Assembly: GCA_907165135.1 (NCBI GenBank)
Contig: OU015567.1
Location: 14,942,001-15,006,000, forward strand
From: Oikopleura dioica
Taxonomy: Eukaryota > Animalia > Chordata
Length of the DNA stretch: 64,000 bases
Reading direction: 5' to 3'
In this document: positions 13,046 to 17,990 of the stretch, in pieces
Layout: each line of letters begins with the position of its first letter
Numbering within the stretch: position 1 is the stretch's first letter
The notes under the pieces: model-generated
What the model saw: only the letters and a program-made list of their open reading frames with translations
Databases searched by the model: none
Told to the model about the DNA's origin: nothing
Position numbers and translations under genes: made by a program

Positions 13046-13721
13046 GCAATAATTGTACAAAAAGGAAAAATTCTAATAAAAGTGAATGAAAAACGTATTT
13101 CCGTGGATAATTCAAATAATTTTAATTCAAATGATTTAGATCGCTTGCTTTGAACATGAAATTAACTTCCCCTACAAGTTTCGTTCTCTATGCTGCTATT
13201 TTGCTAGAAGACAAGAATAATTTGAATACAAGAAAAAACAACAAGAAGTGAAATTAAAACACAATTTTGGTAAAGAGAGAGAAAGCAGGTTTTTTTCGAG
13301 GTTTCAGGTGATAAAGAAAACATTTTAAACAATAAAGCAATTATGTGGTGGCGGCGGTGGTGTTTGAGGAACCAGGAAGGGCTCTCTCCGCGGCGGGAAA
13401 CGTGAGCTCGAGCTGAAAAGACGGAAATTTTCTTGTGATCGATTTTAGAGAGCGCTGCCACTTGAAATGCTGAAATTAAGCGCGCGACAATAAAATTCAA
13501 CTGCTTTAACTTCGCGTTTTCAAATAACAAAAAAGCTTGGCAAACGGAAGTTCGAAAAAACTTATGTCAAGTGAACGTGGTTTGATTCTCGTGGCGGCTT
13601 TAATCTACCTTGATAGGGCGGAAAATAGCCTTCAAATAGGATAGAAGCAAGATAAACCCGACAGTTATCGGCGAGGTCTTTAAGTTATGATTCAATCAAA
13701 TATAAACCGTATTGATCTTTT

Positions 13722-13872
13722 TTCCCTTTACTTCCAATTGTCACTAGAGAAGGATCGAGAAGCCGCTTGCGGCTTTGAGTATAAAAAAAAACATCGAAAA
13801 GCCGCACTTCGAATTTTGTTTTACTTGAAGCCGCAAGCGGCCTCTCGATCCTACTCTAGTGACAATTGGAAG
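13722..13872. mobile_element. Palindromic MITE family B copy
   Basis: CAATTGTCACTAGAG..GAGAAGCCGCTTGCGGCTT ... AAGCCGCAAGCGGCCTCTC..CTCTAGTGACAATTG. Confidence 0.8.
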
Positions 13873-13965
13873 TTAAAATTAGTCGCTCAGAAATGAGAAT
13901 ATTAACGGCTTAAACATTCTTGGCTGATAAATGTATAGATCGGGATTCTCATTTCTCAGTGGTTA

Positions 13966-14135
13966 ATTTTCCCTTGACTCCAATTTTCACTAGAGTAGAA
14001 TCGAGAAGCCGCTTGCGGCTTCGAGTAAAAAAACATTGAAAAGCCACGCTTCGAGCGGCTTAAATTTCGTTTCACTCGAAGCCGCAAGCGGCTTCTCGAT
14101 CCAACTCTAGTGAAAAATGGAGTCAAGGGAAAAAT
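13966..14135. mobile_element. Palindromic MITE family B copy
   Basis: TTTTCCCTTGACTCCAATTTTCACTAGAG ... CTCTAGTGAAAAATGGAGTCAAGGGAAAA. Confidence 0.85.
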
Positions 14136-14811
14136 ATGCCAAAAATGCGTCAGAAACGAGAATTTAAACGGTCTGATTTTACTTCGTGTGCGGGAACATT
14201 CCCCCACGATTTGTACCGGATTCTGCGCCGGATAAACTGCGAAATTTGGGGCTTCCGACGGGCTTTCCTTGCTGTCAAAGTGCTTAGCTCTAAAAGTGAT
14301 TTATGGAACACGCTCGTTTCTATATTGTAATTAAGGGTGGCGAGCCATAAATATTTACTCAAATCTAGCCCGCTGAGTTGTTCAGGGGAGCCTTAAGTAC
14401 TCGCTTAGGTTGCTACAGATGATTCTCTTCATAAGCTTTTCAGAAAACCATTTTTCTTAGTGGCTTTTTCCGCAAAAAAAAACTTGACCGCTTTTTCTGC
14501 AGCTTGGTAAATAACGCGCTTACCCCATTCTTTGGACGATCGACTACAGCTTCCAGGCGTTTCGCATCATAACATCAGTAACTCGGGTTAGGCACACGTG
14601 TTGAAACAGATTTATTACGGATTTTAAAACTCTTAGTGGTCTAGCGCCCATTCCTCAGAAACAAGACTACATCGATTTTCATATTAAAAATTGGATACTA
14701 TTACCTTAGCCATTAATTTTTCACCAATTCGAAGATAATTATCAGTTTATTGAAAAAAATAGATTTATCAGTTTGGGAAAAATTTAAGCAGATTTTTGGC
14801 AGGAGCGATTT

Positions 14812-14934
14812 TTAAAGTCTTGTTTGGAAAGAAACCGTCATTTTAATTTCTTCCGTCGTGGAACTTTGTCTGAAGAAGTAGTTGACTCGGTCGGCGATGA
14901 TCATATCTTTTTCGATGTTTTTGCAAAAGTTCAT
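14812..14934 (-). CDS. 40-aa microprotein, paralog B (MNFCKNIEKDMIIADRVNYFFRQSSTTEEIKMTVSFQTRL)
   Basis: 27/40 identical to 15295-15417 with synonymous changes at conserved residues; TATATAA upstream, A-rich leader, AATAAA (- strand, 14746-14751) downstream. Confidence 0.75.
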   Translation of the reverse strand: MNFCKNIEKDMIIADRVNYFFRQSSTTEEIKMTVSFQTRL

Positions 14935-15003
14935 TTTTTAGTTTAGTTCTTTTTTGAGTTCTTGTTTTTCGTTTTTTGATGGACTGAGGGGATCTGAGAG
15001 CGG

Positions 15004-15223
15004 TTATATACGCTCGCGGCAGGATTTCCATCGAAAAAAACGAATGGAAATGCGGTGCAAATGATCTTTGGAAAGACATAAAGCGCTAGATACGTAACGA
15101 CGTCTCTATAGTTACGTCTGACGATCTACAGTAACGCAGCTTTCACGTTTTCCCATGTAGTTAGCGACCATTTCCGTTTGAACATGGAATCGCTGTTGGA
15201 AATCCCGCTGGAAGTGAATATAA
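15004..15223. promoter_or_regulatory. Mirror-image bidirectional promoter between the two micro-ORFs
   Basis: Each side has GGAAATCCY-N10-WATATAA (15004-15029 on -, 15198-15223 on +); central ACGT/TGACG cluster at 15091-15123. Confidence 0.55.
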
Positions 15224-15294
15224 TCGACCGCAGCTTCCCACTTTCCAACCACAAAAAAGACAAAAACTCAAAGTCAAAAACAAAAAAGAAAAAA

Positions 15295-15417
15295 ATGAAC
15301 TTTTCCTCCACCATCCAACAAGACATCATCGCAGCTGACAAAGTCAACTACTTCTTCAGACAATGCTCTCGAAGCGAAGAAATCAAAATGCTCGTTTCTT
15401 ATCAAACAAGACTCTAA
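15295..15417 (+). CDS. 40-aa microprotein, paralog A (MNFSSTIQQDIIAADKVNYFFRQCSRSEEIKMLVSYQTRL)
   Basis: Same length as paralog B and 27/40 identical; AATAAA at 15482-15487. Confidence 0.75.
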   Translation: MNFSSTIQQDIIAADKVNYFFRQCSRSEEIKMLVSYQTRL

Positions 15418-15722
15418 AAAACTCAAAAAATGACAACACTGATAAATCGACTGTATGAACTGATAAACCAATTTCTGACGAAATAAAACTGATAATCTCT
15501 TTCAAAAATGTCTTTAAGGTTACTTCCTTCGATTTCCCGAAAGTTCGAAATTTAGCTCATTTTTGTTGAGTACCCTAAAAACGGCTCTGACAGAATCGAG
15601 ATCTATGATAGATCTACTTATAGACCCCTTGTCTCAAGCTCAAGCATTTGCAGGTTCAGAGTTATTCAATGCTAAAGTTGGGGAAATCGAAGGTAGTACC
15701 CTAAATTGTGCCTAACCCTTCC

Positions 15723-17990
15723 CGAAATAAGCATCAGTATCAATGCTCGCAGAAACTCCGGAGTAATAATTGAGAAATTCGTCGTGCGTCACCTTAAAAT
15801 TAATAAAAATAAAGGAAAAACCACTTATCGCCGGACAGGGGCTCGCAGCTCGATAAGGGTAGCAACGTGCAGTTTCTAACAAATATCTTTTTTATATCTC
15901 ATTTTCTAATTTGCTGCGTTAGTATAAAGAAACAGAGCCGTTATCGATTATTCTGGGGCAGCGCAACGGCCAGCTGGGCGACGCTACGTGTTAGATAAAG
16001 CTCTAGCCCTGTCGTCGAAGAAAAATATCATCATTTATGACATTTATCGCTAAAACGGCCTGTTGCTTCCCAATCAGCTGGACACGCGTCACAGAGCAAA
16101 ATCAGAGCACGTGCAGAACGCTCCTGCTTCTCGAGTTAGACTCTCGCTGTCTGCAAAACGTGATGGCATCTAACTCGATAATGGACAAGTCTCTGGCAGA
16201 GCTTGATAATCAACGATAATCGGCTCGCGCTCACCTGCCCATCTGGATCGTTTGGAGAGTCGAATGATTTCAAAAACTCCAAGAAAACGTCGTCCTCGGT
16301 GTATTCCCCGTTGATGTATTTTTGTGAAACTGAATCTTTTTAGAAACAACAGCAAAGGTAAAAATTGATACCTTAGGGTTGTAGACGCCCCGAAGATCAT
16401 CAACAGTGACGACACCATCGCCACTCTTGTCGAGCTTCCTGAACTGGGCTCGACAATCTGTTTGGAAAACCTGAGTCAGGTTTTGAAGAGCCGAAGTGGT
16501 TTCGCAAGTGTTTGAAAATAGATAAGAGTGATTCAATTGCAAAGCCGCTACTCGGCTTTTCATTTTAGCTCTTTAGAACCTAACTCAGGTTTTTCACACA
16601 GGTTGCCGAGCCCAGTTCCTGAATGCCTGCGCAATTAGGCTTTTTCGATTCTTGCTCATTGGCGGCCTTTGGTTGGTTCTAGAGCTGTTTTGCAAGGTAC
16701 CATGAAGGGTTATCAGAAATGAGAGGTCGATTGAACCATTTCCTAAGAGCAATTAAAAACTCATCAAAGTCCAGTGATCCACTCCCATCGCGATCCATTC
16801 TCGAGTACATCTCCGTGATTTCATCCGGCTACCGTGGAAATTCCTTTTTGTCAATCAAAAATGCAAGTGAAAAAGGTGTCCTCGACCAAGTGGCGGATAA
16901 ATGAGTCTGGCGGGGGTCCACCTTGTCCCGCCACCGCCAAGTCACCACCCGTCTTTGTCCCAGATTTCAAATTTCATCACTCACGGTTTCTCTAAAACCA
17001 GCCAATTTGAATGTTAGCATACGCCCGGGTCTTATTTTGCGAATTTCTCTGAGATTGGAGTTGATTATTCCCCGCACGAAAAGATCATGGGCGCCGTACT
17101 TTCGAAGGTACATAACTGCATCCGTCGTCTTGTTACGATTTTTTGTTTTCAAAAAAGAAGAGATTTAAAAAGCAATTTCCTCCAGATCGACACCGTAATC
17201 GCGCAGGCCACGTTTGAATTCCTGACGCGGGTTTCACTTTGTGGCCACAGAACCTTTTGCAGGAAAATTAAGTCAACTAAAAGAACTAAGAACTTTACTT
17301 CTTATCCCCTTACACTTTCTTCTCTTGTCCCGAAATCACGACACTTTGAAGTCGACCCTCTTATCTAACTTTGTTTCTAAATGACTTTCTCATTTAAAAA
17401 TTTTTCGAGTTTTTGAATGAAATTATCAAGCAAATTTTCCTAAGAAAAAAGACGACTGAAAACCCTAACCCTAACCCAAAAATAGGGTGTCGTCATGAAC
17501 CGACAAAGAAATTTCGAAAAATTTTGCGTGGGTGGCTACTCGGCTACTGATTGGCCGGTTAGCCGAATGCGAGCTTCTTATTGGTTGAAAATTTCCACGC
17601 AAAATTTGTCGAAATTTTTATTGGTTCCTGACACCTTCCCCCAAAACCCAGCTAATAACCCTAACCCTAGGCCATTTTTCAACACAGGGGTGAATTTTAA
17701 AATGAAGCGGATGAGGTCCTTAATTTTCATCTCTTGATAAACTTCTCGCAAATTAGAGCTGTGGCGGAAACCGTCCTGAAAATCAATCTTCTTATTCCCG
17801 TCATCGTCCATTATTCGGAAAGTACGGCCGAGTCCCTGAAACATACGAGTCCGGAAATGTGATTAATTCCATGACGAAAGAGAGTCTTTCCAATTTGTTC
17901 AACCCTCTTTCGACTTTTGAGGGCCGCGATAAAGAGCCGTGCTTTTTCCGCTAATGCGTGTGTACTGCTCGGACAGCAGACTATCGAAAA
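15723..17990 (-). CDS. CAPSL: Calcyphosin-like EF-hand calcium-binding protein (first and last exon ends uncertain)
   Basis: Exons read GLGRTFRIMDDDGNKKIDFQ | EFKRGLRDYGVDLE | PDEITEMYSRMDRDGSGSLDFDEFLIALR | PPMSKNRKSLIAQAFR | KLDKSGDGVVTVDDLRGVYNPK | ..YINGEYTEDDVFLEFLKSFDSPNDPDGQ | VTHDEFLNYYSGVSASIDTDAYF, collinear with calcyphosin-like proteins; apparent 1-nt deletion in the T5 run 16319-16323. Confidence 0.9.
16444..16615. mobile_element. MITE family A copy forming a coding-exon intron
   Basis: Perfect 8-bp TSD TTCCTGAA (16436-16443 and 16616-16623); TIR CTGGGCTCG..CGAGCCCAG. Confidence 0.95.
17459..17675. mobile_element. Family C element (double ATTGG, CCCTAA tracts) inside a calcyphosin intron
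   Basis: Reverse complement matches 6010-6185; ATTGG at 17550 and 17580. Confidence 0.75.

Follow-up and report, generated by a model that had tools for sequence, protein, structure and literature searches.

Examining a 64,000-nucleotide (nt) stretch of the Oikopleura dioica genome (GenBank assembly GCA_907165135.1, contig OU015567.1, positions 14,942,001 to 15,006,000 of the forward strand; hereafter the window, numbered from its first nucleotide), we analysed a head-to-head pair of very short open reading frames (ORFs), which lie in the last intron of the gene for calcyphosin, a calcium-binding protein, and probably represent two paralogous protein-coding microgenes. Gene A, the distal copy (14934 to 14812, minus strand), runs in the direction of the host and consists of 40 codons and a TAA, its peptide being MNFCKNIEKDMIIADRVNYFFRQSSTTEEIKMTVSFQTRL; gene B, the proximal inverted paralogue (15295 to 15417, plus strand), is antisense to the host, has 40 codons and a TAA as well, and encodes MNFSSTIQQDIIAADKVNYFFRQCSRSEEIKMLVSYQTRL. 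The coordinates, peptides and 40-residue lengths put forward in a sequence-only reading of this locus match the window exactly. So does the proposed relationship of the two copies: a gap-free BLASTP alignment gives 27 of 40 residues identical and 33 of 40 positive (E-value 4e-20), and all five synonymous codon pairs that had been listed are present (GAT/GAC, GCC/GCT, TCC/TCT, ATT/ATC and CTT/CTC for gene A/gene B). The proportion of synonymous differences (pS 0.52) exceeds that of non-synonymous ones (pN 0.19; Fisher p 0.002; ratio of non-synonymous to synonymous rates, dN/dS, 0.24), other frames are without synonymous excess, and the similarity of the two genes far exceeds chance. Comparing the window with itself places both transcription units in a local inverted duplication (~14700-15530, axis at ~15107), the best-conserved arms of which (14809-14953 and 15276-15420) comprise 145 nt at 75%. 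An automatic ORF list is misleading here, as had been noticed before, with gene B appearing only as a 79-residue extension from a TTG and with antisense and wrong-frame ORFs overlapping the locus. A six-frame search of all 64,281,565 bases of the Okinawa genome (OKI2018_I69) found two copies only; the family is therefore not a dispersed repeat, and the repeat-element alternative, which the earlier reading had named as a way to be wrong, finds no repeat family behind it.

Relatives of the two peptides are extremely few. When 1.84 billion representative proteins were searched exhaustively with a profile, a single true match emerged, P0001 (E 1.9e-17); two further matches were rejected as repeat proteins matching by composition. 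P0001 is encoded on the ENA metagenome contig L003 (2988-3134), where the real ORF has 40 codons and ends in QTRL-TGA; the gene caller took two TGA as Trp on this eukaryotic contig and thereby produced a 48-residue product, and this miscalled version is the sole form of the family in the protein collection. A degenerate-DNA scan of metagenomes (EEIKM, four codons, QTRL, stop) then gave two JGI contigs, L004 and L005, with intact 40-codon orthologues; another ENA contig, L006, matches L004 at 100% where the two overlap and continues the L004 locus upstream. An initial metagenome scan with patterns from the N-terminal half had yielded 368 pattern matches and no confirmed one, with patterns that would miss the known orthologues. 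All three orthologues (L003, L004, L005) occupy the same position beside the calcyphosin gene and share the ending QTRL-stop. Colinearity with the window extends over ~4.3 kb in L003, and in L004 and L005 it is seen to either side of the gene. The environmental loci are ~70% identical to the window and 79-90% identical to one another, which fits different cryptic lineages of Oikopleura dioica. The Okinawa lineage is estimated to have split from other Oikopleura dioica lineages ~25 million years ago (PMC11067885).

Beyond these orthologues, the claim that no homologue can be recognised stands up well: a Pfam scan of both peptides gave no match at E<=10, a profile search of the PDB stayed at chance level (best E 0.77), the ESM Atlas offered no usable match, and the only true match among the 1.84 billion proteins was the orthologue P0001. 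Word-based protein searches found nothing with a single peptide and only P0001 with a profile of three sequences, exact look-up of four possible ORF versions showed them to be absent from the protein collection, and literature searches on peptide words and on Oikopleura microproteins brought up nothing relevant. The calcyphosin-like locus of another animal (L008) has no microgene within the 2.7 kb examined. Judged by these searches, the family is an orphan and apparently larvacean-specific.

Selection on the reading frame is the strongest argument for a gene. The five intact sequences, drawn from four lineages, agree in their length of 40 codons and in the homologous placement of ATG and stop, and 20 of the 40 aligned residues are invariant, including M1, F3, I7, D10, A14, D15, V17, F21-R22-Q23, S25, E28-E29-I30-K31-M32 and Q37-T38-R39-L40. 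Nei-Gojobori estimates of dN/dS between gene A and the three orthologues are 0.12-0.16 (Fisher p<=2e-4), and L003 and L004 differ by seven synonymous and two non-synonymous changes (dN/dS 0.05); gene B against the three orthologues gives 0.29-0.50. The same calculation in both shifted frames shows no synonymous excess. Fitting the GY94 codon model gives an omega of 0.12, and forcing omega to 1 costs 18.8 log-likelihood units (2ΔlnL 37.5, p about 9e-10). Substitutions between gene A and L003 are distributed 7:3:16 over the three codon positions. By codon comparison, the reading frame is thus shown to be under purifying selection in at least four Oikopleura lineages, and the test of dN/dS across orthologues that had been proposed gives a value far from 1. 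The small-protein family suggested earlier accordingly gains three orthologues of 40 codons, with a dN/dS of 0.12 and with start, stop, promoter motif and poly(A) block all kept.

What happens at this locus when the frame is not maintained can also be seen. Between the calcyphosin exon and the intact gene, at the position of gene B, a second inverted copy is still recognisable in L005, L003 and L006, interrupted by an in-frame TAA at codon 28 and, ahead of the C-terminus, by a 1-nt deletion; in L003 it has additionally lost its ATG and gained a 4-nt insertion, and in L006 it has decayed further. Since a remnant of the second copy exists in other lineages, the duplication predates the lineage split. 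The decayed copies serve as a natural neutral control: because a second copy decays without selection, it is meaningful that the distal copy is intact in every lineage compared, and that Okinawa has both copies intact. Among the lineages compared, the proximal copy is intact only in the Okinawa lineage, and gene B forms the longest branch in the codon tree; on this sequence evidence gene B is probably, not certainly, functional.

The last two coding exons of the host flank the pair. The penultimate one (15724-15792, minus strand, VTHDEFLNYYSGVSASIDTDAYF) lies within the ORF 15712-15882(-) and matches solved calcyphosin and calcyphosin-like chains, the match ending 10-12 residues short of their end. 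The last coding exon (14544-14576, minus strand) encodes DVMMRNAWKL followed by TAG, is the same as the C-terminus of protein P0005, and differs from L004 and L005 in one of 33 nt, synonymously. P0005, which was found by a search with another host exon and whose source label 'merc' we take to denote a transcript-derived catalogue, joins DAYF straight to DVMMRNAWKL and ends ...SASIDTDAYFDVMMRNAWKL; further matches of that search end ...DTDEEFVAMMTSAWRL and are presumably mammalian. With the last exon encoded beyond both microgenes, these must lie inside the last calcyphosin intron (14577-15723, minus strand, with the transcript-type junction DAYF/DVMM, the slash marking the splice point), wholly between the penultimate and last coding exons, gene A in sense and gene B in antisense orientation. 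The host exons were searched singly by reference, and the nested position is read from separate exons, not from a joined model. As P0005 skips the region, the ORF is not host coding sequence, which answers the concern that the peptides might be exons of a longer gene.

P0005 also reads ...EYTEDDEFLNYY..., without ~23 residues (VFLEFLKSFDSPNDPDGQVTHD) that are encoded at 16136-16343 (minus strand) of the window; this gap may stem from alternative splicing, or from two similar DEFL stretches having been collapsed in assembly. A derivation of the peptide from a calcyphosin exon, an idea prompted by the sequence FFRQ that we believe to occur in human calcyphosin, was rejected: Oikopleura dioica calcyphosin reads GRTFRIMD there, and both a profile comparison and a window-wide tblastn gave noise. 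The intron itself looks lineage-specific, because in the calcyphosin-like gene L008 a single exon covers the equivalent stretch (...DSDVYFDLMMRHAWKL) without interruption. Between gene B and the host exon, ~190 bp are flanked by a 28-nt inverted repeat (86%; 15514-15541 and 15678-15705) that looks like a lineage-specific insertion of a miniature inverted-repeat transposable element (MITE), which would explain in part why the intron is longer here.

The TATA-like boxes, A-rich leaders and AATAAA signals that had been described could be located for both copies. The core promoter of gene A (15004-15030, minus strand) consists of TGGAAATCC (15022-15030), 11 nt and TATATAA (15004-15010), situated ~70 nt before the ATG, and that of gene B (15197-15224, plus strand) of TGGAAATCC (15197-15205) followed by AATATAAT (15217-15224), with GGAAT at ~15186 and TTTCC at ~15173 further upstream. 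Alignment shows the 8-nt TGGAAATC to be invariant in all five promoters, 10-15 nt 5' of the TATA box, and this combination is kept 60-75 nt before the ATG in all five units; extra GGAAAT and TTTCC elements occur further upstream in the aligned promoters. On the 3' side, gene A carries a block at 14739-14773 (minus strand) with AACTGATAA (14765-14773) and an AATAAA (14746-14751) overlapping a second AACTGATAA (14739-14747), and gene B one at 15438-15495 (plus strand) with three CTGATAA motifs (15438-15448, 15458-15466, 15487-15495) and an AATAAA (15482-15487). The order CTGATAA ... AATAAACTGATAAT is common to all 3' regions compared, the gene A block being kept in L003, L004 and L005, and the 64-kb window holds five AACTGATAA sites, four of which fall within gene A and gene B, where 0.75 would be expected by chance. 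As common regulatory modules of the genome, TGGAAATC plus TATA (five genomic matches) and AATAAACTGATAAT (three) were rejected, neither showing an excess over controls.

Co-regulation of the pair, claimed before, is plausible on sequence grounds because both promoters share the invariant TGGAAATC, and it is the TATA-type promoter, and nothing else, that suggests that the microgenes may be inducible. GGAAA-type motifs resemble sites of Rel-homology and NFAT proteins, and WGATAR resembles the sites of GATA factors. The genome contains a single match to the Rel-homology domain (C2:10182249-10182800, 50.6 bits), interrupted by stops which probably are introns; its protein would be a candidate reader of the GGAAAT motifs, to be taken as a lead only.

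Taken together, these data make a real, translated microprotein gene very likely, and an old inverted duplication of such a gene, giving a pair of protein-coding microgenes nested in the last calcyphosin intron, is likely to be the best explanation of the locus as a whole. Each unit would be transcribed from a promoter of its own, composed of TGGAAATC and TATA, with an A-rich leader only some tens of nt long, an intron-less ORF of 40 codons and a 3' untranslated region (UTR) of ~70-90 nt ending in a AATAAACTGATAAT-type block. For the product, mean hydropathy is -0.3 to -0.4, with neither a signal nor a membrane segment, and AlphaFold2 predicts a single helix over residues 2-39 (predicted local distance difference test, pLDDT, 82) with the conserved hydrophobic positions on one face. 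We infer from these predictions a soluble, non-membrane peptide of 40 residues that would form one amphipathic helix, with F3, I7, M/I11, A14, V17 and F21 as its hydrophobic residues.

Such a peptide might act as a small adaptor or competitor. Its C-terminal QTRL is invariant in all five sequences and fits the consensus X-[S/T]-X-hydrophobic-COOH, while the four residues preceding it vary, and an invariant tail after variable residues is the pattern that a C-terminal docking motif would show. The terminal T-R-L would then dock in a class I PDZ pocket, leaving the helix to contact a second partner; this PDZ-binding step, already suggested in the sequence-only reading, is our leading guess as to mechanism, and a tentative one that is more likely wrong than right. 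EEIKM and FRQ are as invariant as QTRL, so that the C-terminus is not uniquely conserved. Within the invariant stretch F-R-Q-x-S25-x-x-E-E, patterns of basophilic-kinase and CK2-type phosphorylation may be present: hydrophobic-x-R-x-x-S is the pattern of CaMK and PKD-type kinases, which F/L-F-R-Q-x-S25 fits, and S-x-x-E is that of CK2, which S25-x-x-E fits.

Several points weigh against this picture. The case for a translated gene is made by comparing sequences, and the sample in which selection was estimated comprises five sequences from closely related lineages, two of them near-identical. At several synonymous sites all copies agree (for example TTCAGACAA and GAAGAAAT.AAAATG), which could stem from constraint on host-intron nucleotides as well as from codon preference. 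Constraint on gene B is weak (omega 0.3-0.5), and in a neutral simulation allowing substitutions only, a 40-codon ORF survived intact in 6.4% of trials. The predicted helix comes from a very shallow alignment, and the PDZ and phosphorylation readings, like the assignments of promoter factors, are matches to patterns.

Four other explanations have to be considered. The one that survives best accepts a real microprotein and replaces the PDZ partner: a basic amphipathic helix may bind an EF-hand protein, calmodulin or calcyphosin itself, with nesting coupling its expression to that of the host. Calmodulin-binding helices show spacings of 1-5-10 and 1-8-14, and the hydrophobic positions 3, 7, 12 and 7, 14, 20 of the peptide would fit them; the helix carries a net charge of +3 in the L lineages, and the linkage of gene and host is kept despite the extreme genome scrambling in this species complex (PMC11067885). 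Yet these fits are pattern matching, the linkage is trivially explained by the intronic position, the peptide shows no sequence relation to a known EF-hand ligand, and the invariant C-terminus would be left unexplained, so that we consider EF-hand binding improbable.

The sense copy might, secondly, owe its expression to host transcripts, in which it would form an alternative terminal exon or, in an isoform that retains the intron and is polyadenylated at the intronic AATAAA, a downstream ORF. Gene A and its orthologues are indeed co-oriented with calcyphosin, 0.4-0.8 kb past the penultimate exon, and L003 and L005 have an AG just before the ATG that would be in frame with a phase-1 donor. In the window, however, an in-frame TAA two codons before the ATG of gene A precludes any read-in, TATA and TGGAAATC are kept in all five units, gene B has the same architecture although it is antisense to the host, and P0005 shows the host mRNA skipping the region; we regard expression from host transcripts as very unlikely.

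Slimmer still is the chance that the conserved stretch is not translated at all and acts on the host as an RNA or DNA element (a hairpin, or a control of splicing or transcription), with the ORF being incidental. In favour of such an element, nucleotide-level conservation of the host intron ends and of the 3' part is strong, host pre-mRNA would allow pairing of one copy with the other, the helix between the intron ends is predicted with a probability of about 1, and some synonymous sites never vary. Against it stand the codon periodicity (7:3:16) and the omega of 0.12 (p about 1e-9) seen in the proposed frame only, and an ATG and a stop kept at the same positions in five sequences; moreover, the distal ORF is intact and constrained even in lineages whose decayed partner copy rules out a hairpin between the two.

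Finally, that the pair represents the arms of a transposable or foldback element to which the ORF belongs is highly unlikely: although the units form an inverted duplication, the intron with its perfect terminal inverted repeats splits a single exon of another animal as an insertion would, and MITE-like hairpins are common around the locus, there are two peptide copies in 64 Mb and five matches to the terminal 12-mer against four to its control, the gene is syntenic in four lineages and under purifying selection, unlike selfish repeats of such size, and the element might describe the origin of the intron but leaves the maintenance of the ORF unexplained.

Two of the hairpins in question, both palindromic (13727-13876 and 13964-14136), share the core GAAGCCGCTTGCGGCTTC and most likely are MITE copies. 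Rfam gave only sub-threshold matches to plant miRNA models, on these hairpins at 13727-14136, and no match at the microgene locus. Further along, a block at 13230-13503 (L004 1143-1398; L005 1682-1946) is 84% identical against a local background of ~70% and probably belongs to the next downstream gene, as an exon or a conserved element.

The intron that harbours the microgenes has unusual ends. An inverted repeat of 12 nt, 100% complementary in the window, is formed by a 3'-side arm at 14585-14596, which reads GGGTTAGGCACA on the plus strand and pairs with 15707-15718, the 5'-side arm (TGTGCCTAACCC on the plus strand); in L005 (intron at L005 61-876) the repeat extends to 13 nt. Both arms lie a few nt inside the junctions, and their predicted pairing probability is ~1.0 in the window and in L005. 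The 12-mer has five genomic matches, compared with four for a control, and hence constitutes no repeat family. Candidate host junctions are DAYF/DVMM and DAYFGKVTDVMM. The former, at codon level TTY/GAT, would make the intron ends GG..CT in the window and GC..CT in L003, L005 and L006. A canonical, in-frame GT-AG alternative (15716-14582), adding four residues, is available in the window only; three of the four lineages appear to lack a usable AG acceptor, L004 and L005 having no AG ahead of the conserved last exon. Published annotation of Oikopleura dioica allows the intron types GA-AG, GC-AG, GG-AG, GT-CG and GT-AA (PMC11067885). The implied ends GG..CT and GC..CT fall outside these published types. 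Beside the 3' helix arm, ~55 nt (14597-14650, minus strand) are ~93% identical to L004 and L005, against a background of ~70%, and include AATAAA as well as the palindrome CACGTG. The lineages differ here by two 1-nt indels that change the frame, and the constraint is therefore not on a protein.

Combining these features, one may imagine that the present intron entered an ancestral exon as a ~1-kb piece of DNA with perfectly complementary ends, that the terminal helix of 12-13 bp permits splicing without GT/AG, and that the microgene, brought along or born within it, was recruited by selection into the pathway of the host, where calcyphosin, calmodulin or a PDZ scaffold would be its partner. 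We consider this sequence of events unlikely as a whole.

Among known systems, the nearest are the microproteins encoded by small ORFs (smORFs), such as Drosophila sarcolamban and tarsal-less/pri or vertebrate myoregulin and DWORF, with which the Oikopleura microgenes share an ORF below the annotation cut-off, a kept length, start and stop, and a dN/dS well below 1. By these signs of coding constraint the Oikopleura genes belong to the conserved smORF genes, with the differences that they have no sequence relation to those named, no transmembrane segment, a monocistronic organisation with their own TATA promoter, and a distribution so far known only from Oikopleura. The C-termini of CFTR (...DTRL) and NaPi-IIa (...ATRL) are ligands of NHERF-type PDZ domains. 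The free T-R-L end would be the common feature; in those ligands it terminates a large membrane protein, and in Oikopleura a putative protein of no more than 40 residues.

As a nested arrangement, the pair resembles OMG, EVI2A and EVI2B in human NF1 and many cases in Drosophila, being composed of independent units, each with its own promoter and poly(A) signal, wholly inside a host intron, one of them sense and the other antisense. Introns of Oikopleura dioica mostly are very short. The one described here exceeds 1.1 kb, apparently is lineage-specific and is closed by a perfect predicted helix of 12-13 bp. Helices bridging an intron bring its splice sites together in yeast RP51B/RPS17B and in teleost (AC)n/(GT)n introns. 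The calcyphosin intron is alike in having complementary segments near both ends, with a predicted pairing of ~1 that is kept across lineages, and differs in that its helix encloses two genes and that three of the four lineages appear to be without an AG acceptor before the conserved last exon. Oikopleura dioica is known for non-GT/AG introns. Like the non-canonical or insertion-derived introns of this species it splits what is a single exon in another animal; unlike them, it has GG..CT or GC..CT ends and a terminal repeat that belongs to no family.

Genes for microproteins are systematically missed by annotation, and at this locus selection could be demonstrated from genome and metagenome sequence alone. 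Oikopleura dioica is an experimentally tractable chordate with a very compact genome and lends itself to knock-out, tagging and peptide pull-downs. With its predicted closing helix, the apparently lineage-specific intron offers a natural test case for structure-assisted non-canonical splicing as well as for intron gain by insertion; were the insertion scenario to be true, the birth of a gene and the birth of an intron would have taken place in one event.

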